A DNA stretch of 64,000 nt from Rhodosorus marinus CCMP1338 (GCA_029953675.1 JAMWBK010000003.1:1054001-1118000); one strand, 5' to 3'. Positions 15,784-37,634 are shown, counted from the first letter of the stretch. A program made the numbers and translations. The notes: a model not told the origin generated them from the sequence alone.

Positions 15784-16027
15784 ATGGAGGTTGGATTTGT
15801 TTTGGGGGTTGGTGGTGTTGTTGGGGCTGGCAAGTCTTTTGCCGGTTCCCGATGTCAGCACGGGGGGCGGGTGATGGTTTCTTCAAGGAAGTTGAGGGAA
15901 TCTGTGGTGATGATGGGTAAGAAGAAGAGGGTTGTAGATGATGATGATGGTGGTATTGAAGTGTTTAAGAGCGTTGATGAGGGAGAGGATCTGTTGGCGC
16001 TTGCGCTTATGGAGGAACCGCAGGAGG

Positions 16028-16059
<32 letters not shown>

Positions 16060-18961
16060 AAGGGTGAAGAAGCGGAGGAAATACCCGCGTTTTCTCCAGT
16101 TGGGGAAGGTGAAGATTTGCTTGAAGCGGCACTCGCGGATGACGAGTCCGCAAAGGCTTCTGAGAATGGAGCTTCAAAAAAGGGCTCGAAGAAGAAGGGT
16201 GGAAAGAAGAAGTCGGTTATTGTGGCAGAGGAAGACAACGCAGTGGACGTCTTCGCGAGCATTGAAGACCCAAGCGCCTTGCTTGAACGGGAGCTAGAGA
16301 CTCCGCAGCAGCAATCGAAGAAACAGAAGAAGGGTATGAAGGGCGCTGTAGCTCCGGAACCTGAAGTTGCGGTTGTGGAGGTTGAGCAGCCTGAGGTTGT
16401 TCCCGAGGTTGTTCCCGAGGCTGAAAACGGTACGCCGCCCGGTGGTAGCAATGAGCCACCTCTAAACCTTGGTTGTTGGAAGTCAAAATTGTCTCAAGTC
16501 ATCTGTTTCTACACTTGCAGAGGTCGATGACGAATCTAGTGAATCCTTGCCGGAGATTGTTGCTGAAGAAGAGCTCGAGGTAACTCTAGACCTTTGAATT
16601 CCTCTCAGACTTGAAAGTCGCCTTATCCAATTTGATGTGCTAACGGCCATTTCAACTGTTGATGCAGGAGGAGGTCGAGGACTTGGATGCTGAGACTGTC
16701 GACGAGCTCGAGCACTTGGCGCTTGATGTAGAAGATTTCACAATGCGTGGAGTAAAGAAACGCGCTCAGGTTGTTCGCAAGAACTCCCTAGAGAGGAGCG
16801 GTGGAGACAGGTTCGTCTATGTGAGGATGGAGGAAATTGGACAAACTTTCAAAAACACTGACGTGCTAAAAAGCGTCACTTGGGAAGTAAGCTGCGGGTG
16901 CAACGGAATGGCCTACGTTTGCACCGAAATGTCTGCATTGTTCTAAACTATTCTTGGCCTTGGTTTTCTCATGTCAGGTCAAGACCGGTGACAGAATTGG
17001 GCTCGTTGGACAGAACGGAAGCGGAAAGACCACGCAGTTGAAAATAATTGCGGGTCAACTAGAACCGACCAAAGGAGAAGTAATCAAATCTTCGCCGAGA
17101 CTTAAGGCATCATTCCTCCGCCAGGAGTTTGTGGACGAGCTTGATACGAATGCCAGTCTGCGGACTGAATTCGAGAAATCGTTTGTGGATGAGTCCAAGG
17201 CGCTTGCTCGCTACAAAGAGGTTGAAACCTCCTTGACCGCCGCTTCTGAAGATATGGAGCAGATGGAATCGCTTCTTAATGAGATGGAGGAATTGCGCCT
17301 GAATATCGAGGCTATGGACGCATGGAATCTAACCTCGCGGATTGACAAGATTCTTCCGCTCCTCGGATTCGATCAAGACGATCTCGAGGCGAAAGTAGGA
17401 TCCTTCTCTGGGGGTTGGAAGGTTCGTATGGAGAGTTGGCGTTTCCCGTACAGTATTCAGCCAATGCTTAAACCCGCTTCTGCTCCCTTTCACGTAGGTC
17501 CGAATCGGAATTGGCAAGCTTCTTCTTCAGAACCCTGATCTCCTGCTTCTTGATGAGCCAACCAACCATTTGGACTTGGACAGTGTGGAGTGGCTAGAAA
17601 ACTTCCTCCGAACACTGGACACACCCATGGTTATTGTCAGTCATGACCGAGAATTTATGGATAGACTGTGCACCAAAATTGTTGAAACTGAGGGGGGAGA
17701 GGCATTTGAATTCAAGGGCAACTACACCGACTTTGTGAAGCAAAAGAAGGAGCGCCGCGAGCAGTGGGAATCTGCTTGGGACAAGCAGAAGAGGTTCGTC
17801 GATGAGCAGACGAAATTTATCCGGCGATTTAGGGCATCCGCCGCGCGAGCAGCGCAGGTGAAATCGAGAGAGAAGATGCTTGCAAAGCTTGAGAAGAGTA
17901 TTGATTGGGTGCGACAACCGCCTCGGGGAGGCAAGCCTCTTGTGTTCCGGTTTCCTCCTGCACCCCGTTCCGGAAGGGACGTCTGTGTGCTTGAGGGTAT
18001 TACCCACGGCTACAATGGACAACTGTTGTTCAAGGATGCGAACTTCGTCTTGGAAAGAGGAGACAGGATCGCCATTGTCGGACCCAACGGTGCCGGTAAA
18101 TCGACTCTGTTGCGGCTTGCGCTTGGATTGGAGAAACCGCTTCAAGGTGTAGCAGAATGCAAGAGCCTGCATGGTGTCATCCCTGCATACTTTGCGCAGA
18201 ATCAAGCGGATGAGCTGGACTTGAACAAGAGTGTACTCCAGATCGTTGAGGCCGCGCAGGCTGGAGATATGACCTACGAAGAGATCAGAGCTGTTCTTGG
18301 CAAGTTCCTGTTCAAGGGAGACGCTGTTGACAAGAAGGTAAGACAGGGGGGGGGGCGGAGCGGTAGCTCCCTTTCGCAAATCTAACCTCTCCCTACGTGT
18401 GTGTGTAGATATCTGCTTTAAGCGGTGGTGAAAAGGCAAGAGTAGCTCTATGCAAAATTATGGTGTCCCCGGCGAATCTATTGATACTGGATGAGCCGAC
18501 CAACCATCTCGACATTCCAGCTAAGGAGATGCTGGAAGAGGCTATTCAGGAGTTTGACGGAACTGTCCTGGTTGTTTCTCATGACCGTTACTTCGTCTCA
18601 AGAGTAAGCGCGACTCTCTTAAGAATTCTGTTGGACGAAAGAACCCACACCCTGCGCGCTAATATAGGATGAATTGTTTTTCTTTGATCTGAAGATTGCG
18701 CACCAGATTCTCGCCATTGAGGATGGTCAGGTTGAACTTTATGACGGGGACTATCGAAGCTACATTGAGAAGAACTCAGAGTTGATGTCCAAGTTGCAAA
18801 GCCGGCAGCTAGATGGTCTCACTACCATCAAGAGTGCACCGGTCATTCAGGCTGAACCGGTGCAACTTGACAGGAAGCAGAAGAAGAAGAAGAATTTTGG
18901 AGGCTCCGGAATAAAGAGCGGGAAGACGAAGGAGATGAACGCGAAGCGGTGGTCAAGATAG
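15784..18961 (+). CDS. ABC-F family ATPase (ribosome-associated type), probably plastid-targeted, with Lys/Glu-rich low-complexity N-extension; multi-exon
   Basis: Two NBDs ([12 protein letters not shown]...FSGGWKVRI...[11 protein letters not shown]; [11 protein letters not shown]...LSGGEKARV...[10 protein letters not shown]), the inter-domain linker, and no TM segments. The N-terminus MEVGFVLG looks like a transit peptide. Confidence 0.92.
16030..16062 (+). repeat. (AAG)11 microsatellite encoding poly-Lys in ABC-F exon 1
   Basis: Read directly; translates to K11. Confidence 0.95.
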
Positions 18962-23731: not shown

Positions 23732-25300
23732 CTTGAGGTTGTCTCAGTAAATCCTCTGCGCTAGGCAATCAACAGCACCACCCAACAAGTCCTACTTGCT
23801 TCACCAACGCAAGGGCTGAAGCATAGCACACCTTAATCCGCCTCAATCTCACAGATCGTCTCTATTCAGCAGCGTCTTCCAGTAGGATCCCTACTCAAGA
23901 ATCCAGCTGCCAAAGTCACCGGGTCCTGGTCCCTTCGAGAGAACAATTCTCTTGATATGACTTCGATCGAAAAGTATCACCACCAGGATTTCACAATACT
24001 GTTCGTAATCTCTCCTCAACCGATCGCCGCGATTAGAACACGGTCAGCGTTGCCCTCATTCTCCCTAGGTGATCTTCAACAATCTCCGCGCTGTCAAGAC
24101 CCTGTCCAAGAGTCGACGCTTCTCCGAAAGCTGCTCCTAACCAGGTTGATCGTTCTGCAAAACTATCAATGCAGCTATCAAAGCAGTAGTCGACTCGATC
24201 TTTTGCTATTGATCTGCTCCCCCGCCCCGTCGCGCGTGCAAAACCCTATCACTTTTTCGCGAGGTAAACATCGACAGGCATCGCGACTGCTTACTCGACG
24301 ATGTCAATAGCCTGGGTTTTCTAAGCGTTTTTCTTACTGGGACAGAGTAGTGTCTTGCATGAACTTTTGAAGATCAGTTAACAGTTTCTCTCAGCTGTTC
24401 CCCCCGCTTTTCCCTTGTCAAGTTTCACCGGGCATAGATTAAATCTCGTGTCATCTCGCGGCACTTGTCGCGCTGTATGCAGATTAACAGCGGCGCCCTG
24501 GACTTGGTTCCTTACTGAATCTTGCGAAGAGCCTGTGTGAGAAACCGCTGCAGACGATGTATGTATAGGTATTCACAGTCTCTCATCCAGTATCGAAAGC
24601 AGGAGCTTGAGTGCAGAAACCCAACCAACCACAAACGCTTGGAGGGGACTATGAAAGTTACCAAAATCGCTTAAGCTTTAACATCAAAACGAGCTCTATC
24701 CATGCTAGTAGCATTACTAGATGTTTGTTTAAGGTCCCGATCTGTTCCATCGCAAACTTCCATGGGCCTTCTGGGTGAAACCATGAGACTAACCCCCCGA
24801 CGTCACCGCTTCACTTGCGCGTGCAGAGTATCGTCTAATCATCGTCACCCCCTCCACATACCCCTTTTCAATAGTGACTGAATATATATTCTCTTGTGTA
24901 TTCATACAAGCGACCTATTTTTATATGGATTGAATCGGAAGATGACACTTATTTTGCTTCATTTTTATTTTACATGCATTTTGTCGAATTGGGATGCTGT
25001 GCAGCGAGCGAACTGGTTGATTAGACGAGCAAATGAGGGAAGTTCGGTTTCGTTTGAGGCGTTGCTAGTCAGTTTTTGACATGTGCTTATAATTCAAGCG
25101 AGAGATGGGTGACATACCATCAAACCAGGTAAGTTTTTGAAGACTTCTCATTGGAAAAGGCTGTATAGCGTCGTGCACGCACCGCTGACGATGATTCCAT
25201 GTTGAAAGTGCACCGTGGACAGTGGTTCTTGAGAAGCATTTTGTTGCAATGGACTAACACACGTTGCTCATTCCTGCTACGTCGCGGTTTTGATGAGAAG

Positions 25301-25726
25301 ATGAAGGTGAGCAGCGCCAGAGCAGGTAAAGTTCCTCTGAAGCCTGGCTTCTCGCAGCTTGATTGGCTGCGGAAGAAGAGTACGAAGATTCCGCCGCGGC
25401 CTCGAAATATTCTTTTAGAGGAGCTCAGGGAGCACTCTTCGGTGGGCAACGCTTGGACTGCTGTCAGAGGAAAGGTTTACGACATATCCCACTATTTAGA
25501 CTATCATCCAGGAGGGGGCCCTTATCTCATGATGGCCGCTGGGAAGGTTTGCGTTTGCCAGATATGATCGTAAGCACTCGATCAGCAATCTATGTGCTGA
25601 ATTGAAGCACATCTATTGTTCTCGTAGGATGCTACCGCCCTCTTCGATAAGTATCATTCTTGGGTTAATATTGAGTTCATGTTGGACAGAATGGTCATCG
25701 GCACCTTGGTTGGGAACCACACCTGA
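25301..25726 (+). CDS. Small cytochrome b5 heme-binding domain protein (like the NCB5OR N-terminal domain); 2 exons. The start could instead be ATG 25199.
   Basis: KVPLKPGFSQLDW, WTAVRGKVYDISHYLDYHPGG (heme His), and after the intron AGKDATALFDKYHSWVNIEFML. Stop TGA 25724-25726. Confidence 0.88.
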
Positions 25727-25989
25727 GATGCTGTAGGAAAGACTCCATGGGCACCGGCAGTCACAGACACTGAGTGGAAACGTGCTTTCGGTGCAACTCA
25801 ATTAATTTACTAGCTCTGTACAAGTAGCCTGCACAGTTCCTTATCTCGTATCGCGTGGCTTGAAGGAACGACGACTTGAATGCCAGGTCAAAGCAATTCG
25901 GCATGTATAAAATTTTTGATGAAGAATAGGAACCAGACTGGATCGATACAAACACTTCATTTGAGTGAGTTCGAGCGGTTGCGCCAGAC

Positions 25990-27527
25990 TCAGTTGCAAG
26001 GTAGTCCTCGAACGCCTCGCAACGCGCACTCAAGGAACGTGTCCGTGACACCGGATAACGTGATTCCAATTGTGTCGGAAACTGTTGTCACACCTAGCGC
26101 CCACTCCCTGTCACTGCTTGGAGTTTGATGAGACACATTCCAAAAGGTATTCACATAAGAAGCTCCGCCAAGAAGCCCCTCCCAAAGTATCATGGCGAAA
26201 ACTATCCAGGCGCTTTGAATCAGCTCGTAAGCCGTGACAATCAGGAGAACCACTAGGTTAACCAGCTGCATCCACAGAGAGACGGAAGAACAGTCAGGCA
26301 CCGGAAACAACTACATCAGTCCCGGGGGAAATTTGGATATCAAGTTTCCAACCTTTCGCGCGGAGGACAGAAAGGCTGCGGATCGATACCTGTAGTATTG
26401 CCAGAAGCCAAATGTTCTTGATCTTGATGAACGAAATCGACGAACGCGAAATGAACACTCCGATCTGGTAGAGAAACTGGTACGTCACGTACAAATCCCA
26501 CTTTCGATCGGTCGAACCGGCATCCGTTTGTTCTCTCAGTACTCTGCGGACGTTTACAAAATCAACCACAGGAAGTACTCCCTGGTTTATCGTATACTCG
26601 AAGTAGTAAACCAGCATCAACGGGAGCATATATTTTAGAAACAGAACCTTCAGGAGAGGTAGCTTCTGTATGAAGGCTCGCGGGCCGAGTAATATTGGCC
26701 GTGCATCGGTGACAGACGATTTCTCTGGCTTGCGGAGGATAAAGTAGTAGGTTAGCAGCAGCCCCAAAGGAATCGGGGAGGTTAGTCGGAGCGTCGTTCT
26801 CGGAGTCAAATTGCATACGACCGTCAAGAGAAAGTAGAAACCTGCCCCAAAAATCCCTTCGCGCATTGTAGCACATAGAGCACAGGGGTTAAGGGCAACC
26901 TTCAGCGCGAGAAAGATGATCTATCCGTTTGGGTTGCTCTGTACCTGCTCCACCGGTTCCAGAACTCCAAGCGCCGATTGTCTTCGGGGAATACGTTGCC
27001 GTTAGTGACAGGAAACTGCTCTCACCGAGCCCACCGACGAGAGAAACAAAAGCAATGGCGCTCAAGCGGATTGCAGTGCTTTCTACTCCTGCAATGATGA
27101 AGAAGACGGAGAATGGAACCAGCGAAATAAATGCAATCCTGATACTGTATGGGATTGTATGGACTCCAAATCCGTATAAAAGCTTCACCACAAGCCCTGG
27201 GGTGGCAGCTGCAAGGAGTACAGCACCTGAATGATCCTCAAAAATGTGCTCTGCAGCCTACGAGTGCAAGTACACACGAATGTTGAGTTTTAGAATTCTT
27301 GCTACAGGTCCTTCACTGGCACAGGTGACAGTACTCACAGATAGGATGACAACATAGCAAAAGTTATTAATCAATCCAAAAAGGAAAAAGGCGACAATGT
27401 TACGCAGATGCTCAGGCTCATCCGAAAGTCTTTTCGCTATGTCATCTGCTTCTTGGCTGAGACCAGGACCGTCCTCGGGTTCCTCGAAGTCCTCATCTAT
27501 CTCAATTTCATCCACTCTCCTCTGCAT
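25990..27527 (-). CDS. CLN3: CLN3/battenin (BTN1) family membrane protein; multi-exon
   Basis: FFLFGLINNFCYVVILS, LGESSFLSLT, WSSGTGGAG, PLMLVYYFEYTINQG, YQIGVFISRSS and EGLLGGASYVNTF. ATG 27527 (MQRRVDE). Confidence 0.93.
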
Positions 27528-28284
27528 CCTCGGCTCGTCAGACCCAGAAGAACGAAATATGGACTCGAACGGCAGTCCGTTTTCTCCTGAAGCAGCGTTC
27601 AGTCCCAGTCCTTCCTTCCACAGGACTCGACGAAAGCGCTTTGTCAACCGTAGTTCATTCTCGGTCTCTACGAAACAATGGATGCCATGAGCTAGAGGGC
27701 ACCTAGTTCACTTCTTTGATCATCCATTGAATATTTCACGTGAACAATTTTGCTCAGTGCTTAACGAGGACGTGGGCTATAGATACTTCAGTGATGCAGC
27801 GGTACTCATTTTTCGGTTTGCCATTGCTAACGGGATTGCAATGAGGTATCGCGACGTATCCAGCTGTCGAAGCCAGTTTCTGACAGCCTTAGCCTACTCA
27901 ACCTTGGCTTTCTCTGCTGTTGTTCATCAGCGAGTTACGAGCAAGGTGCTCCGTCAACGACGCCCAACCTCGTAGCAGCCATGATTGATCAGTTCACAGG
28001 ATTGTAAGGCGTAATTTCGGTGGCTAGTTCGATGCGATTAGCTCTTTCTATCCGACATTCTGGATGAGTCTACCCTGCCCTGTCCGGTCTTGCTTCTGGA
28101 GCTCAGTCAAGCAAAAGAGCTCGGCTCCATCCCAGGTTTTGGCTACTGGTGAGTAGATCCGCACTTCACATGCTTCGGGACGGCTCGGTTGGTTGTAAGA
28201 CGCCTCTTGGCTATGTAGAAAAGGAGATCGCGTCGGAGGCGGGGAAGAATGTAATGAAGGCCCTTTGGAGGATGTTCTAATATT

Positions 28285-28683
28285 ATGGTAGGGATGTGTG
28301 ATGACGACCAGACCTTGTATGATATCTTAGAAGTAGATCCTCGTGTGGGGCAAGCAGCGATTCGTTCGGCATATCGTCAGCTTGCCGTGCGATGGCATCC
28401 CGATAAGAACGTTGACAGCAAGCGAGAGGCAGAGGCGAAATTCAAGAAGGTGTCCCTGGCCTATGAAGTGCTATCCGACAAAGAGAAGCGCGCCGAGTAT
28501 GATCAGCATTTGAGCCATCCGGAGGAGCTCCGAACTCTACTGGAATCGTTCGAGAGCAGTGAGGAGAGGCAACACCCTCTCGCTATGTTCCAGCTTTTCT
28601 TTGCCGGTGAGGATCCGTTTGTCAAGCATTTTGGCCGCCAGTCGTTTGGAGGTGACCTTTTCAGCTCGACGGAGATGGACTAA
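28285..28683 (+). CDS. Small J-domain protein (DNAJB6/B8-like N-terminal J domain plus short G/F region), intronless
   Basis: LYDILEV...AYRQLAVRWHPDKN...FKKVSLAYEVLSDKEKRAEYD followed by FQLFFAGEDPF. Confidence 0.9.
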   Translation: MVGMCDDDQTLYDILEVDPRVGQAAIRSAYRQLAVRWHPDKNVDSKREAEAKFKKVSLAYEVLSDKEKRAEYDQHLSHPEELRTLLESFESSEERQHPLAMFQLFFAGEDPFVKHFGRQSFGGDLFSSTEMD

Positions 28684-29013
28684 ACCGCCAGACAACTCGG
28701 GGTGGATGGCCCATCGCTATGAACCGTGGGGATTTCGATGCCCGCTCCGCGCAGATACAACAGGACTTGGCTGGCCATCCAGTTAGGCAAATCGTGCAAG
28801 CACGCCGTGGAATTCTGTCCGTGCCCGGCAGGGCGGGAGCGTATCCATCTGGCGCATATAGAGTCAAGCCTCGCCGACTATGTAAACGTATTTTCAAGCT
28901 CTAAATTCACAATCAAGAAGCAATAATCTTGCACCAACAGGGACATAGCCCCCATCGTTGCTACGACCGCCTCGCAACATGCCCCGCACCTTTCCATCCA
29001 ACTCCACCGCCAT
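28680..29013 (-). CDS. Candidate 2-exon small gene (73 aa, MAVELDGK-SARLDSICARW...), function unknown
   Basis: Strong-context ATG (gccaagATGG) next to an AT-rich promoter island, donor GTGCGG at 28989, acceptor acatAG at 28878, and an open 198-nt exon to TAG 28680-28682. No homology recognised. Confidence 0.3.
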
Positions 29014-30666
29014 CTTGGCAATCCACACGATGTAAGGTGTTTTATTGTATAAAACTATATTTTATCGTTTAATCTATAGAAATAACCCATAAATCGATAC
29101 AGACAGAGATTCCGATTCCAAAAAAAAACAAACAAACAAAAACGCAACAACAGCTCAAATCCCTGTTTTTTTTCAAGACGAAGACACGGCTTGATCGCCC
29201 CCAAGTTGAAATTTGACCTATTTACGTTGATTCCACTCAACCCCGTCCTTTTCCAACGGAAAAGTCCGTCTATCAAAATCTTTCAGACATTTGTCCAGGA
29301 GTCTTCAAAATGAAAATAAAAAACAATATACTGCGGCAAACATCTAAAATAGATTAAAAAAAGGAGCGATATAAGTCATCACCGGAAAAAACAAAAACAA
29401 AAAAGGACACTAGAGTTTTAGAAAAAAAAAGAACTTTTCCCCCAAAAATTGTTTGGACGGTATAGACAGGCTGTCCAAATCGTGTTCACTGGTGGGATTT
29501 CTGGCCATTCGATGAAGAACCAATGGGGTCCTTTAACCAGAAAGGTCACGTCTGGTGTAAGAAAGTTTTTAGAAAACTATAAGAGTCTTTTTTTGTTGGG
29601 GTGGTATATGTCGTAGGCGGGCATGGTGGCCCGTGTGAGAAACGTGTTTTCCCTTTGATATGAAAGTATGATGATGAAACTCGAGGGTGAGATGGCAATT
29701 TGTCGCGAAGTTTTATTTGTCCAAAAATGAGACTTTCGTCTATTTTTGTAGGGAATCAATCATTTGATATCGAGAATAGAAGATAGTAGGAAGGGGGGGG
29801 TGGGGGGGTGGGGGTGAGGCCGGAGAACTTGGGGGGAGAGGAGGATTTGATCCCCCCCTTCCCCCCGAAGTTACTGAAATTTAGTTTTGAGAATAAACTC
29901 CGGGCAGTTTTCTATTTTTCCAAAATCCGTTTCATATCTTACACCATTATCGATCCGTGAAATTTATTCTCGAAAAACATTAAATCTTCCTCGGGTGGTT
30001 TTGTCTCTGGTGAAACACAATGAAACTTTCATCAACTGAAACAATCAAAGAGAGGGCCTCTTTTCCCAATTTTTTCAGAAGAATTTTATGCTTTTGTTTT
30101 TTTGGAATTAACCAAGCTCTTGATCCAGAAACATATTCCATAATTTGCCAGACTTAAAATAATGTCGAGTATTTCCAAAATCCGGATCCGGGCGACATAA
30201 AGCACATTAATTGTGTCTAAAATAAATGATTTGATCATAATATACATTTTGTTTAGATTATATATTGTAGATTATGAAGGAATATAAATTGTGTCTACTT
30301 TATGGATATATTTGGATTATCTTTTTTTTATTTTGGGAGGCCTTCTTGTCGGGAGATGACGTATGTAGCCTTTTAGCTGTTAAGTACGACAGCTACCAGG
30401 TTGGAAAAGGACGGGGAAGGCATGCTCAGCAGCCTCATGATAATGAACGTAGGTTGGTGAGGAATTGGTTGAGGCTGGGTCGGACCTCAAGATTTTGGTG
30501 AGCTGTTCTGGTTGTGGGTTGCCTGCTGCGAAGGTTAGTTTTCGGGGCGATGATGGGTCGCTTGGTTGGGGGTTGGTAGTGGGAGCTGGTGGTGTGCGGT
30601 GAAGGATCAAGGGAGGTTGGGGGGAAGGGAAAGTTGGGCACCTGTTTTGAATCTGAACTTAAAAGT

Positions 30667-33600
30667 ATGGTTAAGAGTACACCCGAAATCTCGTTCTCTA
30701 AGGGGTCGGAGACATCCCTTCTCTCGAAGGGAGAGCCGATGACCGCATGGGAGCTGAAGGGTGTACACAGAGGCGTATTCTCTCTGGTAGAATCTAATTC
30801 TGGAAAACTGCGCAAGGGGCATAGAGTGATTCCTCCAAAGGACGTGAAGAAGTGGTTCCAGCATATTATTCGCTTCAAGCGCAGGAACGCTTCTGCTCTG
30901 CCTGCTGCCGCAGTTGAGCCAACAAAAGCGCGAAGCGTTTCAGAGACATCCAAGGCCTTTGAGGTCGCAGAAAGTGCAAAGAGGGTGCCAACAGCCGCTC
31001 AACAAGCAACTCCGGCTAGCAGCCAAGCGCCAACTGCGTCCCAGCCGGCAAGCAACGCTCCTACCGGCGCGATAGTTGGAGGTGTTCTGGGGGCAGCGGC
31101 ACTCGGCGGAGCAGGGGCTGCGGTTGTGGGTAACAATCTCAAGTCAAACCATGAAGCTGAAGATGAGAGCCCAACGAAGGCTGATGACGGCGCCGCTCCT
31201 GCCGAACCTGTTGAAGCTCAAGAATTTTCGATGGCAGAGGAGCCCATTGCGGTGCCAGAACAAGATTCTGGTGCAGTGGCCGCGGGAGTCTTGGGTGGTG
31301 CTGCCCTGGCGGGAACGGCTGCAGCTCTCGTCGGTTCAGAGCTGAAGTCCGAGGACGAGCAAGAAAATGCAGGCAACGCAGAACTGGAAGACACCAGCGC
31401 TTCTGTCGAGCCCGTTGAAGCTCAAGAATCTGCAGCTATATCGATATCCACTGAAGAACCAGCGCAGGAGATGGTTGGGAGTCAAGGGTTGGATGCAGGG
31501 ATTGTAGGAGCTACAGGCCTGGCGGCTGGGGCGGCAGCGGCAGCTGCAATGACCTTGGAAGGAGATGAGGACGAGACCGCTGCGGATCAAAAAGCGGACG
31601 AGAGTTCACTGCCCGAGGCATCTCTAGAAGAGGCTCAACTTGCGGGTATGCAAGTGTCGGGAGATGCTGGTGAAACTCTCTGTGGAGCAGCCGAAGGTGT
31701 CGCTGGCGTCGCTACTGCAACGGCTGCGGCCGCTACGACTCTCGGTGGTATGAGCGAACAGGAAGAGTCCTATGTTGAGGAGATCGTAGAAACGTACTCC
31801 ACTGACGCGGACGACGATGGTGCATACGACGAAGAAGCAAATAACGGGGAGCAAGTTTCCAACATCGAGAGTGCGCCCCATGCGGGGCAACTCAGTGGCG
31901 AAAAAGCAGGCTCAGCGAATGTAGCTGCCGAAACTTCAACGATTGGAGGGACTGCGCTTGCAGCAGCTGCTGGCGTAGCTGCTGTGGGAGCTATTGCCGA
32001 CGAGAGGACCAGCACTGAGGCAGAGGGCGGAGAACCTCTTGATCAAGTTGAGGAGGAATTGACGGATGAGAGCAACAACGTGAGTCCCAATTTGAAAGAA
32101 TCTGGAGAAACAGCAGGGGCAGAGTTGAACTGGTCAGAGTCGGCCAACCATGCCGGCGATCATGATCCGGCTGCGGATCTCGATTCGTCCGCTGTTGGAG
32201 CCGTGCTCGCTGCAGGAGCTGCTGGCTTTGGAGCTGTGGCTGGGGTTTCGCTCTTAGCAGACGAGACTCCCCCGGAAGCGGAGGCAGAGAAAGAGGCACC
32301 AACAGGCGCTGAAAGCCAGGGGGATAAGACACTGAGTGAAGCGTCCGGACTTGATGTGGAGAAATCCATTTTGGAGGAAGGCAACGCCAACGCAGTTGCT
32401 GGCGTGCTCGCCGGAGCTGGGGCAGGAATTGCCGTGAGTGAGCTGACAGCAGAGGACACTGCTGGGAAGCATGACACTTCGGCACATGATTCGTCGGTTG
32501 TCATGGAAGACACTTCTGCGGTCATGGATGATTCGCCAAGCCCAGTCCAAGTCGAGTTTGCTGTTGAGGAGAAGGGCATTGATACGGATTCGGCCCCTGT
32601 GATCGTGGGTGCCGCAGCTGCGGAGACAGCCGCAGCCGACGCTGGCTTGGACTCACTAGCTGAGAAGTTTAAGAAGTCGAGAGAAGAAATTGAATCCATT
32701 AACGCGAATGGCCAAGGGAGCATGGTGCAAGACGAATCCAATATCGCCGCTGACAGCGCTTTCGCTGCTGTCCCGGTAGCGGCCGTGGCCGGAGCCGCGG
32801 TGGCCTCCGAGCCTGCAGGAAAGAACCTTCGCACTGTCGTCGAGTATGACACGGAGGACGAAATCGCCTCAGAGGAATCAGCAAGGTCCGGACCCCCGGC
32901 CATCATTACTGCGTCGGCGGTGAAGAGTAAAACCGCAAAAGTGCCGGCCGCGTCGAGAAAAATGGGAAAGGTCGCTGGATTCTTCGCCACAATTGTGTGC
33001 TTTGCCGCTGGTTTCGGCGTGATTGGACTCATTTTGATAGGTCACTTCGCTATGACTTACAATCATCTCTGCCATGGAAGCGTAAGATATATTCCCCCAT
33101 ACCATAGTCGTCCTGTTGACTGCTAGCAGCTTGTTCGAGCATTTGTTGATATCATCATTCTGGACACAACCAAACCACAGTTAATCGGACATGCAGACCG
33201 AGTCGCTTGGAAGGGTGACTTCGACTCATATAAACTTCCGGAGCTCACCGATGTGCAAAGGGAGAAGTGCTTCACTGAAGTGGAGCCGGCGGATCTTGAT
33301 GTACGAACGAGCACATGTTTTTTTTTCTCGGATGCCTGACCTCAACTCCTGCTGATATGTGCGTTCATAAAAAATGCTTGTTCTGCAGATCTCAGGAGCG
33401 GGACCTTCTACTGTGAAGGACGTAGTAGTATCAAATGTGGGTTAACAACCAAGGAGTGAAGTGACAATGCAAACCCTGCTAGTGGATGGCTGAACTGTGT
33501 TTCCTCTACCGATTAGGTTCATTTTGACGCCGACGAGACTGCCCACAGAGACACAATTTCTCACTCAATTTTATCAGATGTAAGTTGTTCTTTCGAAGAG

Positions 33601-36001
33601 TGTCACGTAAAGGCGTACTGCAAGGTAATTGACAAGTGACGGCTGTGTGCGTGGAGCAGGTTACACATCACGGAACTCACCAAAGCAACGGGCGACAGAT
33701 CTTGAAATCAGTTGTTCACTCGGTAAGCACGGAAAAAGCTTGCTTCTTTGACGTTTCTTGGTTGCTTACATAGATATGTGCTCTTAAACTCTGATGAACA
33801 TGAAGACGACGTATGAAGGTCAGTCCAGGATAGAGAAACTGCTGGTGAAGAACTCGATGCTCTACAGGGTACGAAGCGTTCGTGCACCAAAGAAACATGC
33901 TCAGGACTAATTTCACCTGATTGAACCGTTTCTTTTACCTGTTTCCGGAGCAGACTGTCTTTGCGAGCGGAACGATCATTCATAAACCTTCCATTCTTAG
34001 TAGCCTGATCGGAAGAGTTTCGTGTATGGAATCGGCTGTGATAAGTTCCCCAAAGATATGGAAATCAACGATAAGAGATGTAAGTCCAATACTTGATAAA
34101 CAGGTTTCAGTTATGGATCAACCGCAAACTGATGCTTCGGTTCGTTCGTGTGATAGGTTGAAATCAGTGGCCGCGCTGCATTGTCAAGAGGTAGCGTGAA
34201 GAGCAGTGATATTATTGACGTATGTGCATTCAAACCAGTGACCCCTCTGGGTGACCCCTCTGGGTGGAGGAAGACTCAAGTCGCTCTGGCTAACAGTTGC
34301 TCTTCTGTTGATACGTTTTGCTATAGACGCGCGCACTTGGACCCATGTCGATCGAAGGAATGTCGGTTAGCTCTAGCTCGGTCGTAGGATTGGCTGTTGG
34401 TGGCGACTTGACCGTAGATAAGACCTCCATTTCTTCGTCCTCGGTGGAGAAGGTACTTGCGCGATTGCCTGGGTTCATATATCTACGCCAAGCGTTTTGC
34501 TAACTGTCGCTCCCGGCAACAGGTTTACCTGCTTCAGTCCTTGTTTTTGTCCAAATCGTCGATATCAAAGTGCAAAATCAACGAGGTATTAAGGCCACGG
34601 ACGCTTGACTGAACTTTTCGCGAGGCCTACCTCTTGAAATAATTTAACTCTGCAATTTCTCGTCTGCTTTTTTTTGTCCAGTTTGAAGTACTTGATTCCA
34701 CGTTCCTAGGCAAAGTCGCCGTGTCAAAGTCTGACGTCAAGAATGTGAGTCTTTTGGAAAGCAAAATGGGAAACGCCAACCCCTCACACCAGCGGCGTAT
34801 CCCTCATTTTCCCGCACGATTTTGAATTCTGCTTCTGTAGGTTGTCTTCAAAGAAAACCTGAAGCTGGACGAAGTCGCAGTCAGCGGTACCTTCTTGTCC
34901 GAGGTATGTTATTGAACTAGTGCAATGACCATTTTAAGAGCAACTACCGTGCAGACGTACTGAAAGGAGAGCGACACTGATGTGAAACAGGTGTTCGCGA
35001 AGCGTTCGGTTCAGATGAAGGGAGTTACTATCAAAGATTCCGCTCTCGGACTTTTCACGGTCGGAGAGTCAGCCACTCTGTCGAAGTTGTCGATGCTAAG
35101 AGGAACACTGTTGAAGGTATGACTCGTCCTACTCCTTCGATTACAGCTGCGAGCGTCAAACCTTACGTTTTCGTCGTGGACGTTATTCTGGACAATAGAG
35201 TCTGTTCCAAGGACGCGTAGATGCGGAAGGAATTGTTATTGTGGATTCTGTCGTGGAGGACGTGAGTGCAAGACCCCCCCAAAAGAAGTGTCTGCTCTCA
35301 TTCTTTGCGAGATTATGGCTAAAACGTTCCTTGAACTGCTAGGTACTTTTCGGAGATATTTCATCGTTCAATTCCGGAACTTTCAAGGCCTCCAAAATCA
35401 AGTCAGTGGCCTTCCTAGGCCCGGTCTCGTTTTCCAACTCGAAGTTTAAGGATGTTTGGTTTGAGGATGTGACTTTCGGAGGTCCTGTTTCGTTTGATGG
35501 TACCAAGTTTTCAAGCACGACCTTTGCCAATGTGAGTCATGTTTCTCTCCTCCCACGGTGGAACCGGTGTGCATGTTCTCAGCCGTCATTTTCCTGTGAT
35601 CAGTGTGTTTTCAAGGACGCAGTTGACTTCGGGAGCGCGGATGCTAAGGATACTGTATTCTCGAAGGTAGGAACAGCGCCAAACTCTTCTGGAAACTAGT
35701 TAATGGGCGCGTTTCTCATCTCAGAAGTTTTCGTGGTTTCCCGCAGACTCTCTTCGAAGGAAACATTGAGTACGAGCCGAGCTCAGGAATGCACGACCTA
35801 AGGTTGAAACCTGTAAGCAGTTCGAAGATTTTACTGCTGAAAAGGCTTGGTTGGGGTCTGAACTGTTTCTCGTGTTGCTGATTTCTTGTGTAGTTCGACG
35901 TGCTGAGACCTGCAACTGTTGGCGGCCGACCGAAGAAGCAGATCTCCAACGGTCTTGAGGAGATGATTAGGAAGAGCGAGGCCATGTTGCAGGAGCAGTA
36001 G
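30667..36001 (+). CDS. About 1296-aa predicted type II membrane protein: acidic Ala/Gly-rich N-region, one TM helix, C-terminal 21-residue-repeat pentapeptide-like beta-solenoid; 18 exons
   Basis: Hand-assembled GT-AG exons: 30667-33081, 33181-33300, 33389-33436, 33517-33579, 33660-33722, 33806-33868, 33954-34079, 34157-34219, 34327-34452, 34523-34585, 34682-34744, 34841-34903, 34991-35116, 35199-35261, 35343-35531, 35604-35666, 35747-35812, 35894-36001. All are open and all introns are phase 0. TM segment VAGFFATIVCFAAGFGVIGLILIG. The true start may lie upstream. Confidence 0.85.
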
Positions 36002-36435
36002 TTGTCAAGCACTCCAAACGTGAATAAGAGCCCAGTGTGTCTCGCCCTTTTGTAATTAGGCCGATGAGTTTCCCCTTGTCTATCGATGTGTGTATGATCT
36101 CTGAAGTAAGCGATGCAACGAGGCGTTTCCTCCTTGCGTTTTGCTGATGTTTTTTTCAGAAGAGTAATGAAGAATTTATTTGAGAACGTACATCTCGCCA
36201 ATCTGACATCCCCAAAATGAGCAGCGAGTCATCATTCGCGTGTCCACATCCTCACGCTCGACATTCCGTGTATTCGACTGTAGCTCAGTCGAGGTGCGGT
36301 AGTATCAACAGATACTCGGAGAATATCGAAACCGATGCAGGACGGCCAAACCGAGGCCTTCAAGCCCTAACTACTTTGGCCGAATACGGCAGAAAGGATT
36401 CTAGTTGTCGCTCCTCCGCGTAGACGGCCTTGACG

Positions 36436-36770
36436 TCAGATGATGGTGAAAACAATGAAGTGCCGCCTTTCGTCCAACAGCAGGGATAATCTGAGATGAG
36501 CTCGTTCTCGCCGTGTCAGCTGATGAACTTGGCATTTCAACCGTAAACGCTTGGCTTGGTCCAGATCTCTCTCGGCCGAGTGGTCGCGATATGTGACCAC
36601 ATATCGCATCGTCTGGGTGGCTCTCATTCCAGAGTTCCTACTTCAGGGTATTTAGATACATATTTCATGTACCAGCCATGGAGCGTGTCTTTTTCGGCGT
36701 CAAACGATGGCGGACTGAGCTGCAGATATGCATCTAGCCCTGGGATCAGTTCGGTTGGGGTTTTGCAAGG
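36436..36770 (-). mobile_element. Possible degenerate hAT transposase C-terminal dimerisation-domain remnant (frameshifted)
   Basis: LDAYLQ...DTLHGWYMKYVSKYPEVGTL resembles the hAT consensus eld.Yl...l.wW....yP.l. It stops at 36624-36626, and another frame continues with HSAERDLDQAK. No terminal inverted repeats were found. Confidence 0.3.
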
Positions 36771-36781
36771 ACGAGTTCCCT

Positions 36782-37634
36782 CTATCCATTACTTTCACTT
36801 CCTCGAAGCTTGCCCACGGTCTCCACAAGCCTGTCGATATTGCTGCTTATCAGCTCAGTGTCCCTCTTTAGCTCGCGAAAGTCTGAAACCATTGGGGTGA
36901 TAGTTCGCTTGAGCTCAGATACCTCAGTTTTGAGAACGAGGATGTCTTGATGCGCTTGCATTACTTGCTGTGCAAGGCTAGAAGAGGTGTTAACTTGGCT
37001 CTTGAATACTTCGGTAAACGCCTTAGAGTTGTAGTCCATGATGATTCGAAACTGATCGACAGCTGAGCTCACGGTTCGGTCCTCGCTTCTAATCATCGGA
37101 GGAGCTGGATTTTGGAAGGAGCTTGATAGGTTTTCTAGAGCTACGTGTGGTGTGCTATCTTCTCCGTCGCGACCAGCGCCCATCATCGGACTCTCTTGAA
37201 GGTCTTCCTCCGTTCCTATGTTGCTCTCATGTCCTCGTCCAGTTGGGTATGCAGATATTCGCTTCCACAACTGCCTCGCTTTACGCACAAACGGCGCCTC
37301 TGTTGAAGTTCACAAAGCATTCAGGGAGAAGACGATTGTCAGCAGTTTTGTATGAGAGCAGAAGACAATGACTTCACAAGATAATCAACTCGCGAGCACA
37401 GATACCTGGCGTTACTCTGGAATTGACGATCTTGTCGAACTTGTTCTTCAGGGACTTCAGAGACCGAGGATAGATAGCCTGAGCTTGACTCCACTTTGCA
37501 TACTTGCTCGCAACCAAAGGCCAGAGCTCAAGTCCGAGCGACGCATTGGTTTCAATCAGGTAGAGCAAATAGTTGATTTCCTCATCACTAAAGTTCGGGA
37601 TCCCAGCCCTTCCTCTCGCTGCCTCCTCGCTCAT
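36782..37634 (-). CDS. 248-aa protein with N-terminal Myb/SANT-like domain and C-terminal coiled coil; 2 exons (37634-37406, 37299-36782)
   Basis: NFSDEEINYLLYLI...WPLVASKY...RSLKSLKNKFDKI pattern. A phase-1 GT-AG intron joins it in frame to APFVRKARQLWKRI. Heptad-rich tail ILVLKTEVSELKR..FRELKRDTELISSNIDRLVETVGKL. Confidence 0.7.

Follow-up and report, generated by a model that had tools for sequence, protein, structure and literature searches.

A 21-residue pentapeptide-type repeat, encoded largely one coil per phase-0 exon, in a predicted membrane protein of the red alga Rhodosorus marinus

What kind of protein is made by a gene in which thirteen consecutive exons are exact multiples of 63 nt, and how could such a gene have arisen? 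The question is raised by a locus in the 64,000-nt stretch JAMWBK010000003.1:1054001-1118000 (the window, i.e. the whole stretch of DNA that was analysed; all coordinates are numbered from its first letter) of the nuclear genome of Rhodosorus marinus, a red alga of the class Stylonematophyceae, for which an RNA-seq-trained BRAKER annotation lists 8392 genes and 24,821 introns (PMC10250338). An earlier note, made from the sequence alone, had read these exons as 18 aligned repeats of 21 amino acids (aa) that build a pentapeptide-like beta-solenoid C-terminal to a single transmembrane (TM) helix, and had proposed that the solenoid is extracellular or lumenal and that in-frame exon skipping could tune its length or surface. 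Our analysis indicates that the gene, at 30667-36001 on the plus strand, probably encodes a type II-oriented single-pass membrane protein with an extracytoplasmic quadrilateral beta-helix of ~20 coils, in a variant with 21 residues per coil. The rod would be ~10 nm long, assuming the ~4.8 Å per coil that is established for beta-helices.

The spliced model runs from ATG to stop through 18 exons to give a protein of 1296 aa, and all 17 introns are in phase 0. It had been remarked that the ORF track misses the array entirely, which holds for prokaryote-style open reading frames (ORFs) and fails for GenBank, where the BRAKER/RNA-seq annotation carries one gene with identical start and stop, a product of 1296 aa and a weak Pentapeptide_3 mark. 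Rescanning 33.3-36.1 kb for stop-free segments flanked by AG and GT, with lengths that are multiples of 63 nt, returned the 13 consecutive repeat exons (33517-35666, plus strand; 63, 63, 63, 126, 63, 126, 63, 63, 63, 126, 63, 189 and 63 nt, all phase 0) with coordinates and lengths identical to those first read, and the joined coding sequence yielded exactly the quoted sequences as 18 in-register units of 21 aa. Because single AG..GT stop-free segments of such lengths are common, with a density of ~4 per kb on each strand of the window, the significance of the array lies in the unbroken in-register chain and in no single segment. The 13-exon core of the array stands as proposed, and its extent has to be enlarged by the flanking exons of 48 and 66 nt, which carry partial and terminal coils. 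On the N-terminal side, exons 2 and 3 together encode coil 0 (ADLDI-SGAGP-STVKD-VVVSN), a canonical 20-residue pentapeptide coil.

The column composition of the 18 units agrees with the 6-5-5-5 hydrophobic spacing that had been pointed out, positions 3, 9, 14 and 19 being occupied by F, L, I or V, while position 17 is Ser or Thr in 15 of the 18 and position 5 is Gly in 8. A true period of 21, as claimed for this variant, is given both by the 63-nt exons and by the hydrophobic autocorrelation of the spliced domain, which peaks at lags of 5, 16, 21 (r=0.51), 26, 37 and 42 and gives r=-0.02 at lag 20, i.e. no 20-residue period. In a leave-one-out test with a hidden Markov model (HMM), 8 of the 18 coils ranked first and 14 ranked in the top 6 among ~1750 background fragments from the rest of the window. 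Identity from unit to unit averages 16% at the amino-acid and 34% at the nucleotide level, and only coils 16 and 17 are close to each other (10/21).

Transcript-derived proteins were collected with a profile (A3) made from four clean 42-aa two-coil stretches, namely the three 126-nt exons and coils 16-17 of the 189-nt exon, which in a local test gave low scores on synthetic pentapeptide sequences with a period of 20. An exhaustive search of 1.84 billion representative proteins (E<=1e-3) returned 11 matches, among which the relatives are a Rhodosorus cluster and P0005 only. The top match, P0001, represents a 90% cluster with seven members, which are ORFs from R. marinus transcriptomes (MMETSP0011, UniProt A0A7S2ZVY4 and others) and JGI ORFs. 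P0014, a protein of 1295 aa from MMETSP0011, a second R. marinus strain, reads at full length through every predicted junction, and both P0014 and P0013 are fully spliced, with all 18 coils in order and no residue gained or missing at a junction. The repeat-exon junctions are therefore real and are used in transcripts as had been predicted. Between the strains, the part from the TM helix to the C-terminus is 90% identical and the N-terminal domain 75%.

The same seven ORFs bear on the idea of an alternative-splicing toolkit, in which symmetric exons would be skipped in frame to give rods of varied length or surface. All 13 repeat exons are indeed symmetric (phase 0-0) and skippable without a frameshift, and the number of coils differs by exactly one unit between genera, as described below. 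However, no coil is lacking in any of the seven assembled transcript ORFs, a small sample of assemblies rather than read counts; two are full length, and the other five (P0001, P0012, P0015, P0016 and P0017) have retained-intron ends with premature stops, the intron in question being either the last one or one that follows coil 3, 5, 6 or 11. In six of the seven, every coil is present as far as the ORF end or the retained intron. Since no ORF lacks an exon, the isoform variation visible in the assemblies is intron retention and not skipping. Every coil, moreover, has its own conserved sequence and positional orthologue, which argues that coils are not interchangeable, and we regard rod tuning by exon skipping as very unlikely. 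The frequent intron retention suggests either slow or inefficient splicing of a 17-intron gene or abundant pre-mRNA in the libraries. Intron 15 (35532-35603, plus strand) is 72 nt long, in frame and stop-free, and its retention would add 24 residues (VSHVSLLPRWNRCACSQPSFSCDQ) between coils 17 and 18 and leave the protein untruncated; no isoform retaining it was found among the seven transcript ORFs.

The relative outside the genus, P0005, is a 598-aa protein of Purpureofilum apyrenoidigerum (Stylonematophyceae, EukProt) with a hydrophobic anchor at its very start, the same juxtamembrane domain, repeats and an acidic C-terminal tail. Its period is likewise 21 (autocorrelation of 0.51 at a lag of 21 vs -0.12 at a lag of 20). 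The two proteins align coil by coil over 534 aa (34% identical, E=9e-89), and the alignment contains two single-residue indels and one gap of exactly 21 residues, so that a relative with a different number of coils, which the earlier note had thought worth seeking, is at hand (19 vs 18 coils). For 14 of the 18 Rhodosorus coils the positional orthologue is the best match (mean BLOSUM score of 32 on the diagonal and 5 off it), and identity at exposed positions is 26-39% between orthologous coils vs 9-16% between non-orthologous ones. As coils match their positional counterparts, the array of ~18 distinct coils is older than the split between Rhodosorus and Purpureofilum, since which it has changed by one whole coil.

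The remaining matches of the profile search (P0002-P0004 and P0006-P0011) were rejected as relatives, being bacterial adhesin-like repeats, ordinary prokaryotic pentapeptide proteins with a period of 5/10, an LRR-like (leucine-rich repeat) protein and junk repeats; in P0003 and P0006, the two pentapeptide matches tested, no 21-residue period was present. No R. marinus paralogue cluster appeared in the exhaustive profile search and no other copy of the repeat elsewhere in the 64-kb window; a single-copy nuclear gene is the best explanation. A word-indexed homologue search with the spliced 508-aa C-terminus gave no match, and one with a three-sequence family alignment gave P0005 only, the Rhodosorus proteins themselves not being returned. 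No genomic locus of P0005 is on record. Two scans of metagenome contigs gave no match and a single match, L003 (SMUY01234532.1, 1-2566), respectively; the latter was discarded as a chance match of WRVDFDSY on a contig that holds a 589-aa transposase-like ORF in another frame and has no repeat-HMM signal.

The pentapeptide-like character claimed for the repeats was borne out by HMMER comparison with Pfam. The window protein passes the cut-off of Pentapeptide_3 (PF13576; 41.7 bits vs 27) over coils 15-18, P0014 scores 46.3 bits against the same model, and the orthologue P0005 passes three pentapeptide models (PF13576 with 60.9 bits, PF13599 with 43.5 vs 38 and PF00805 with 21.7 vs 20.2). Sub-threshold matches of the window protein were Pentapeptide_4, Pentapeptide and the SV2 luminal domain, and the other beta-solenoid families (hexapeptide LbH, bactofilin, PbH1/pectate lyase and DUF3494) gave no Pfam match at E<=10 for the window protein or at E<=1 for its relatives.

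The residue pattern within the coil points in the same direction. The i positions (3, 9, 14 and 19) have a mean side-chain volume of 160, a Kyte-Doolittle value of 3.4 and 0.2 charged residues per 18, and the i-2 positions (1, 7, 12 and 17) have a mean volume of 122 and 1.0 charged residue per 18; the i-1, i+1 and i+2 positions are polar, and position 6 is a supernumerary small or polar residue. This i/i-2 pattern agrees with the packing rule of the pentapeptide-repeat (Rfr) fold, in which four pentapeptides make up a coil and only sporadic loop insertions are seen in structures (PMC8145042), and it suggests that i and i-2 side chains point inward on four faces. Because position 17 is an i-2 position, the Ser/Thr ladder described there, which is present, would be an inward ladder and no surface ladder. 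The best sequence matches in the PDB are the SV2C luminal domains, which are solved pentapeptide helices with 20 residues per coil. In the HMMER alignment, SV2C has one 1-residue gap per coil, opposite a Gly-Pro/Gly-Arg turn, with the gaps 21 query residues apart; an additional residue in every coil, placed at the Gly turn that follows face 1, accounts for the hydrophobic period of 21 rather than 20. The 21-residue coil may thus be pictured as a variant of the right-handed quadrilateral beta-helix, in which bulky residues at positions 3/9/14/19 and smaller ones at 1/7/12/17 would fill the interior behind four faces and the extra residue would sit in that Gly turn, and the rod as beginning with a coil of 20 residues, continuing through 18 coils of exactly 21 and closing with a terminal coil of 22.

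Single-sequence AlphaFold2 models were made of the window stretch 35343-35666 (108 aa, coils 15-18) and of P0005; because the 72-nt intron is in frame and stop-free, the 108-aa model holds 24 intron-encoded residues. When the model of the 108-aa stretch was compared with the PDB by Foldseek, the 21 best-ranked matches were SV2 luminal domains, and lower matches included Rfr, alr1298, MfpA, AlbG and Np275 together with a few unrelated solenoids, none of them significant. Several observations limit the case for a regular four-sided helix of 21-residue coils. All of these Foldseek matches have E>=0.013, and the model itself has a mean predicted local distance difference test (pLDDT) score of 52, with 66-71 over the first three coils, which are modelled as short strands. 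The model of P0005 (pLDDT 44) has short beta strands as well, and its Foldseek matches are of mixed solenoid types at E>=0.73. Pfam detects only the last ~4 of ~20 coils; coils 1-3, 11 and 18 score weakly against the profile of their own family, and in coils 1-2 some core positions are taken by His or by polar residues. In Purpureofilum, two coils are off 21 residues by one, so that a length of exactly 21 is not absolute.

Some of these points would suit another solenoid geometry, such as a three-sided right-handed helix of the pectate-lyase/PbH1 type with 21-22 residues per coil, in which case the Pfam match would describe the last four coils only. Three-sided helices typically have 21-22 residues per coil, Pfam sees coils 15-18 only, and the AlphaFold models are of low confidence, with the Foldseek matches of P0005 mixed in solenoid type. 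A three-sided helix is nevertheless quite unlikely in our judgement, given the 5-residue sub-period (peaks at 5, 16, 21 and 26) and the i-2/i pattern on four faces in all 18 coils, the lack of any PbH1, bactofilin or hexapeptide family even at E<=10, and the best structural matches of the 108-aa model, which are overwhelmingly four-sided pentapeptide helices.

Where a four-sided rod of this kind would lie is suggested by the sequences that precede it. The TM helix (aa 769-792) has a Kyte-Doolittle value of 2.55 over 19 residues, is the sole segment above 2, and is flanked on its N-terminal side by a Lys/Arg-rich stretch (SRKMGK). The N-terminal domain (aa 1-764, 30667-32960) is rich in Ala, Glu, Ser and Gly (20% Ala and 12% Glu) with a net charge of -89, and contains 8-9 uncharged segments of 16-25 residues composed of Gly, Ala and Val, with GxxxG-like spacing and flanking acidic linkers (e.g. 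GAIVGGVLGAAALGGAGAAVVG). These Gly/Ala-zipper-like segments reach Kyte-Doolittle values of 1.4-2.0 and could be marginal TM or membrane-associating segments. The TM helix proposed to precede the array is supported as the one strong helix, alongside these 8-9 moderately hydrophobic segments. The N-terminal domain has no match in Pfam and is absent from the Purpureofilum orthologue as recorded.

Between the TM helix and the rod, the 40-aa juxtamembrane domain of exon 2 (LIGHADRVAWKGDFDSYKLPELTDVQREKCFTEVEPADLD), likely an N-terminal cap, is conserved in Purpureofilum as W..DFDSY..P..T..Q...CFT, as is a Cys right after the TM helix, so that P0005 retains Cys residues flanking the cap domain on both sides. 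These conserved cysteines, together with the positive-inside rule and the way in which P0005 starts like a signal anchor, lead us to infer that the solenoid lies outside the cytosol, and the extracellular or lumenal placement originally proposed is reasonable in view of the basic N-terminal flank and the signal-anchor TM of the orthologue. On the other side, P0005 may be 5'-truncated, which would weaken the topology argument. In the arrangement we favour, the acidic low-complexity N-terminal ~765 aa would probably stay in the cytosol, and the TM helix would be followed by a small Cys-containing cap and then by the rod of ~20 coils on the lumenal or cell-surface side. Such a rod could be a stiff spacer or scaffold whose binding surfaces differ from coil to coil, a role to which we give a little less than even credence.

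As to how the exons came to match the coils, 12 of the 17 boundaries inside the array, and its two ends as well, have a phase-0 intron that separates position 21 from position 1. So regular a placement and phase is most simply explained by ancient duplication of exon plus intron, and exon duplication is the most economical account of how the array grew, the duplications being ancient in view of the low identity between units and the dissimilar introns. A 63-nt exon would have been duplicated in tandem together with its intron, and five introns would later have been lost, or else two- and three-coil blocks duplicated. Two results count against such a history. The best local score between introns is 21, vs a shuffled maximum of 24, so that the introns carry no trace of exon-plus-intron duplication, although very old duplication would be compatible with this, and no DNA-level tandem repeat of an exon-intron unit was found by Tandem Repeats Finder or by intron-intron alignments. 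Coil boundaries, in addition, often read AG/GT, with a Val codon at position 1, and so resemble proto-splice sites.

The introns could alternatively have been gained independently at a recurrent proto-splice site that the codons of the repeat itself create, since position 21 often has AG at its end and a Val codon (GTN) stands at position 1. Seven of the 13 repeat exons begin with GT and ~5 of the 13 preceding exons end in AG, the introns have no sequence similarity to one another, and R. marinus is intron-rich for a red alga (24,821 introns in 8392 genes). However, intron gain would need twelve independent insertions that agree exactly in phase and position; similar codons are also found at the five coil boundaries that lack an intron, the non-repeat introns of the gene are likewise all in phase 0, and there is no introner-like repeat family among the introns. 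Taken together, these points make intron gain unlikely, and ancient exon duplication is retained as the preferred history.

The features of the gene are collected in Table 1. Its introns are 70-107 nt long with GT..AG ends and have G at +5 in 15 of 17. The acceptor of intron 1 was set at 33180/33181 because the transcript-derived proteins P0014 and P0001 read ...HLCHGS joined directly to LIGHADR... across this junction and because the GenBank product has 1296 aa; this acceptor, which removes 17 residues, is the only single-acceptor change that yields 1296 aa. A 48-nt intron 1 (acceptor 33129/33130, 1313 aa) was ruled out by the transcripts and by the 1296-aa GenBank product. The C-terminal tail (FDVLRPATVGGRPKKQISNGLEEMIRKSEAMLQEQ) is probably helical.

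Table 1. Exons and other features of the R. marinus solenoid gene in window coordinates. All repeat-exon rows are based on the scan for stop-free segments between AG and GT, the junction print-out and transcript-derived proteins.
Feature	Position	Strand	Content	Basis
Exon 1, 2415 nt	30667..33081	+	acidic N-terminal domain, then TM helix	ORF, gene model, hydropathy, GenBank start
TM helix	32971..33042	+	VAGFFATIVCFAAGFGVIGLILIG, aa 769-792	Kyte-Doolittle, translation check
Intron 1, 99 nt	33082..33180	+		acceptor 33180/33181 from transcript-derived proteins
Exon 2, 120 nt	33181..33300	+	juxtamembrane domain LIGHADRVAWKGDFDSYKLPELTDVQREKCFTEVEPADLD; final ADLD opens coil 0	Purpureofilum conservation
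Exon 3, 48 nt	33389..33436	+	ISGAGPSTVKDVVVSN, remainder of coil 0	gene model, transcripts
Repeat exon 1, 63 nt	33517..33579	+	coil 1	see caption
Repeat exon 2, 63 nt	33660..33722	+	coil 2	see caption
Repeat exon 3, 63 nt	33806..33868	+	coil 3	see caption
Repeat exon 4, 126 nt	33954..34079	+	coils 4-5	see caption
Repeat exon 5, 63 nt	34157..34219	+	coil 6	see caption
Repeat exon 6, 126 nt	34327..34452	+	coils 7-8	see caption
Repeat exon 7, 63 nt	34523..34585	+	coil 9	see caption
Repeat exon 8, 63 nt	34682..34744	+	coil 10	see caption
Repeat exon 9, 63 nt	34841..34903	+	coil 11	see caption
Repeat exon 10, 126 nt	34991..35116	+	coils 12-13; region of the 21-aa difference vs Purpureofilum	see caption
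Repeat exon 11, 63 nt	35199..35261	+	coil 14	see caption
Repeat exon 12, 189 nt	35343..35531	+	coils 15-17; most canonical pentapeptide-like, Pfam matches here	see caption
Repeat exon 13, 63 nt	35604..35666	+	coil 18	see caption
Exon 17, 66 nt	35747..35812	+	TLFEGNIEYEPSSGMHDLRLKP, degenerate 22-residue terminal coil	gene model, P0014, Purpureofilum conservation
Last exon, 108 nt incl. stop	35894..36001	+	35-aa C-terminal tail FDVLRPATVGGRPKKQISNGLEEMIRKSEAMLQEQ	gene model, GenBank end, P0013 and P0014

Some further observations concern the locus and its surroundings. Intron 8 contains, at 34238-34266, a perfect 13-nt tandem duplication (GTGACCCCTCTGG x 2.2), which is the sole tandem repeat of the repeat-exon region. 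Antisense to exon 1 lies an Ala/Ser/Thr-rich ATG ORF of 290 aa (32160-33032, minus strand) with no GenBank call, which most likely reflects the low complexity and paucity of stops of the sense sequence and is not a gene. The GenBank neighbours within 25290-37634 are a cytochrome b5 gene (plus strand), a CLN3 gene (minus strand), a single-exon DnaJ gene of 132 aa (28285-28683, plus strand) and an unannotated minus-strand gene of 248 aa (~36782-37634); these neighbours give no hint of a functional link to the solenoid gene. Farther upstream, an ORF at 15784-16530 (plus strand) with a long Lys run and acidic repeats closely precedes a gene for an ABC-F type ATPase (16954-18385) and may be the low-complexity N-terminal exon of that gene.

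The gene is already annotated in GenBank, UniProt lists its products as uncharacterised proteins, and, since it belongs to the pentapeptide clan by sequence, it does not encode a new kind of protein. What is new is the regular 21-residue coil, its restriction to two genera and the near one-to-one mapping of coils onto phase-0 exons; no earlier description of this family or of a coil-per-exon beta-helix was found in the open-access literature. Tentatively, and with some doubt, we propose that the 21-residue coil represents a regular sub-class of quadrilateral beta-helix not described before, in which a continuous one-residue bulge or ridge runs down one corner of the ~10-nm rod, and that the gene evolves in quanta of one exon and one coil, a view suggested by the difference of exactly one coil that separates Rhodosorus from Purpureofilum. 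If this is correct, no pentapeptide-repeat fold would have been seen before to depart regularly from the 20-residue rule, and the coil would offer structural biology and protein design a natural template for a beta-helix of different perimeter, and the length of a beta-solenoid would have been tuned at the level of exons over evolutionary time and not via splicing. Red algae are generally intron-poor, and R. marinus has ~3 introns per gene on average; with 17 of 17 introns in phase 0, the gene is an unusually clean case of one turn per exon and bears on the co-evolution of repeat proteins and introns in an intron-poor lineage. As relatives occur in two genera only among the 1.84 billion proteins searched, the rod may be a trait of the cell surface or endomembranes that is peculiar to one class, the stylonematophycean red algae.

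Compared with known systems, the predicted rod shares much with the pentapeptide repeat proteins (Rfr32/Rfr23, MfpA/Qnr and HetL), which have the same four faces, bulky L/F/I/V residues at i, small residues at i-2 and polar residues elsewhere, and many of which likewise possess an N-terminal cap and a C-terminal helix-like tail (PMC8145042). Known members have 20 residues per coil (4 x 5) and sporadic loops, of 13 residues in AlbG, 6 and 9 in HetL and 24 in Rfr23 (PMC8145042), whereas the Rhodosorus repeat carries one additional residue at the same turn in all 18 coils. The Rhodosorus family further differs in being eukaryotic, membrane-anchored and found in two stylonematophycean genera, with most coils below Pfam detection. 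The luminal domain of SV2A/B/C (PF23894; 4JRA, 5JLV and 6ES1) is a pentapeptide beta-helix that a membrane protein of eukaryotes displays in the lumen, as is proposed for the Rhodosorus rod; in contrast to that rod, it comprises ~4-5 coils of 20 residues placed between TM helices of a transporter. The Pfam model LD_SV2 stays below its cut-off for the window protein and its relatives (22.0, 21.2 and 12.2 bits vs 29), and SV2 and the Rhodosorus repeat give no sign of common descent beyond the clan. With regard to gene structure, repeat proteins with one unit per symmetric exon are represented by ribonuclease inhibitor, with LRR exons of 57 residues, and by fibrillar collagens, with exons of 54 nt, in which exons are likewise multiples of the repeat with a shared intron phase and position, an arrangement classically read as exon duplication. 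Unlike in those proteins, the unit that the Rhodosorus exons encode would be one turn of a beta-solenoid.

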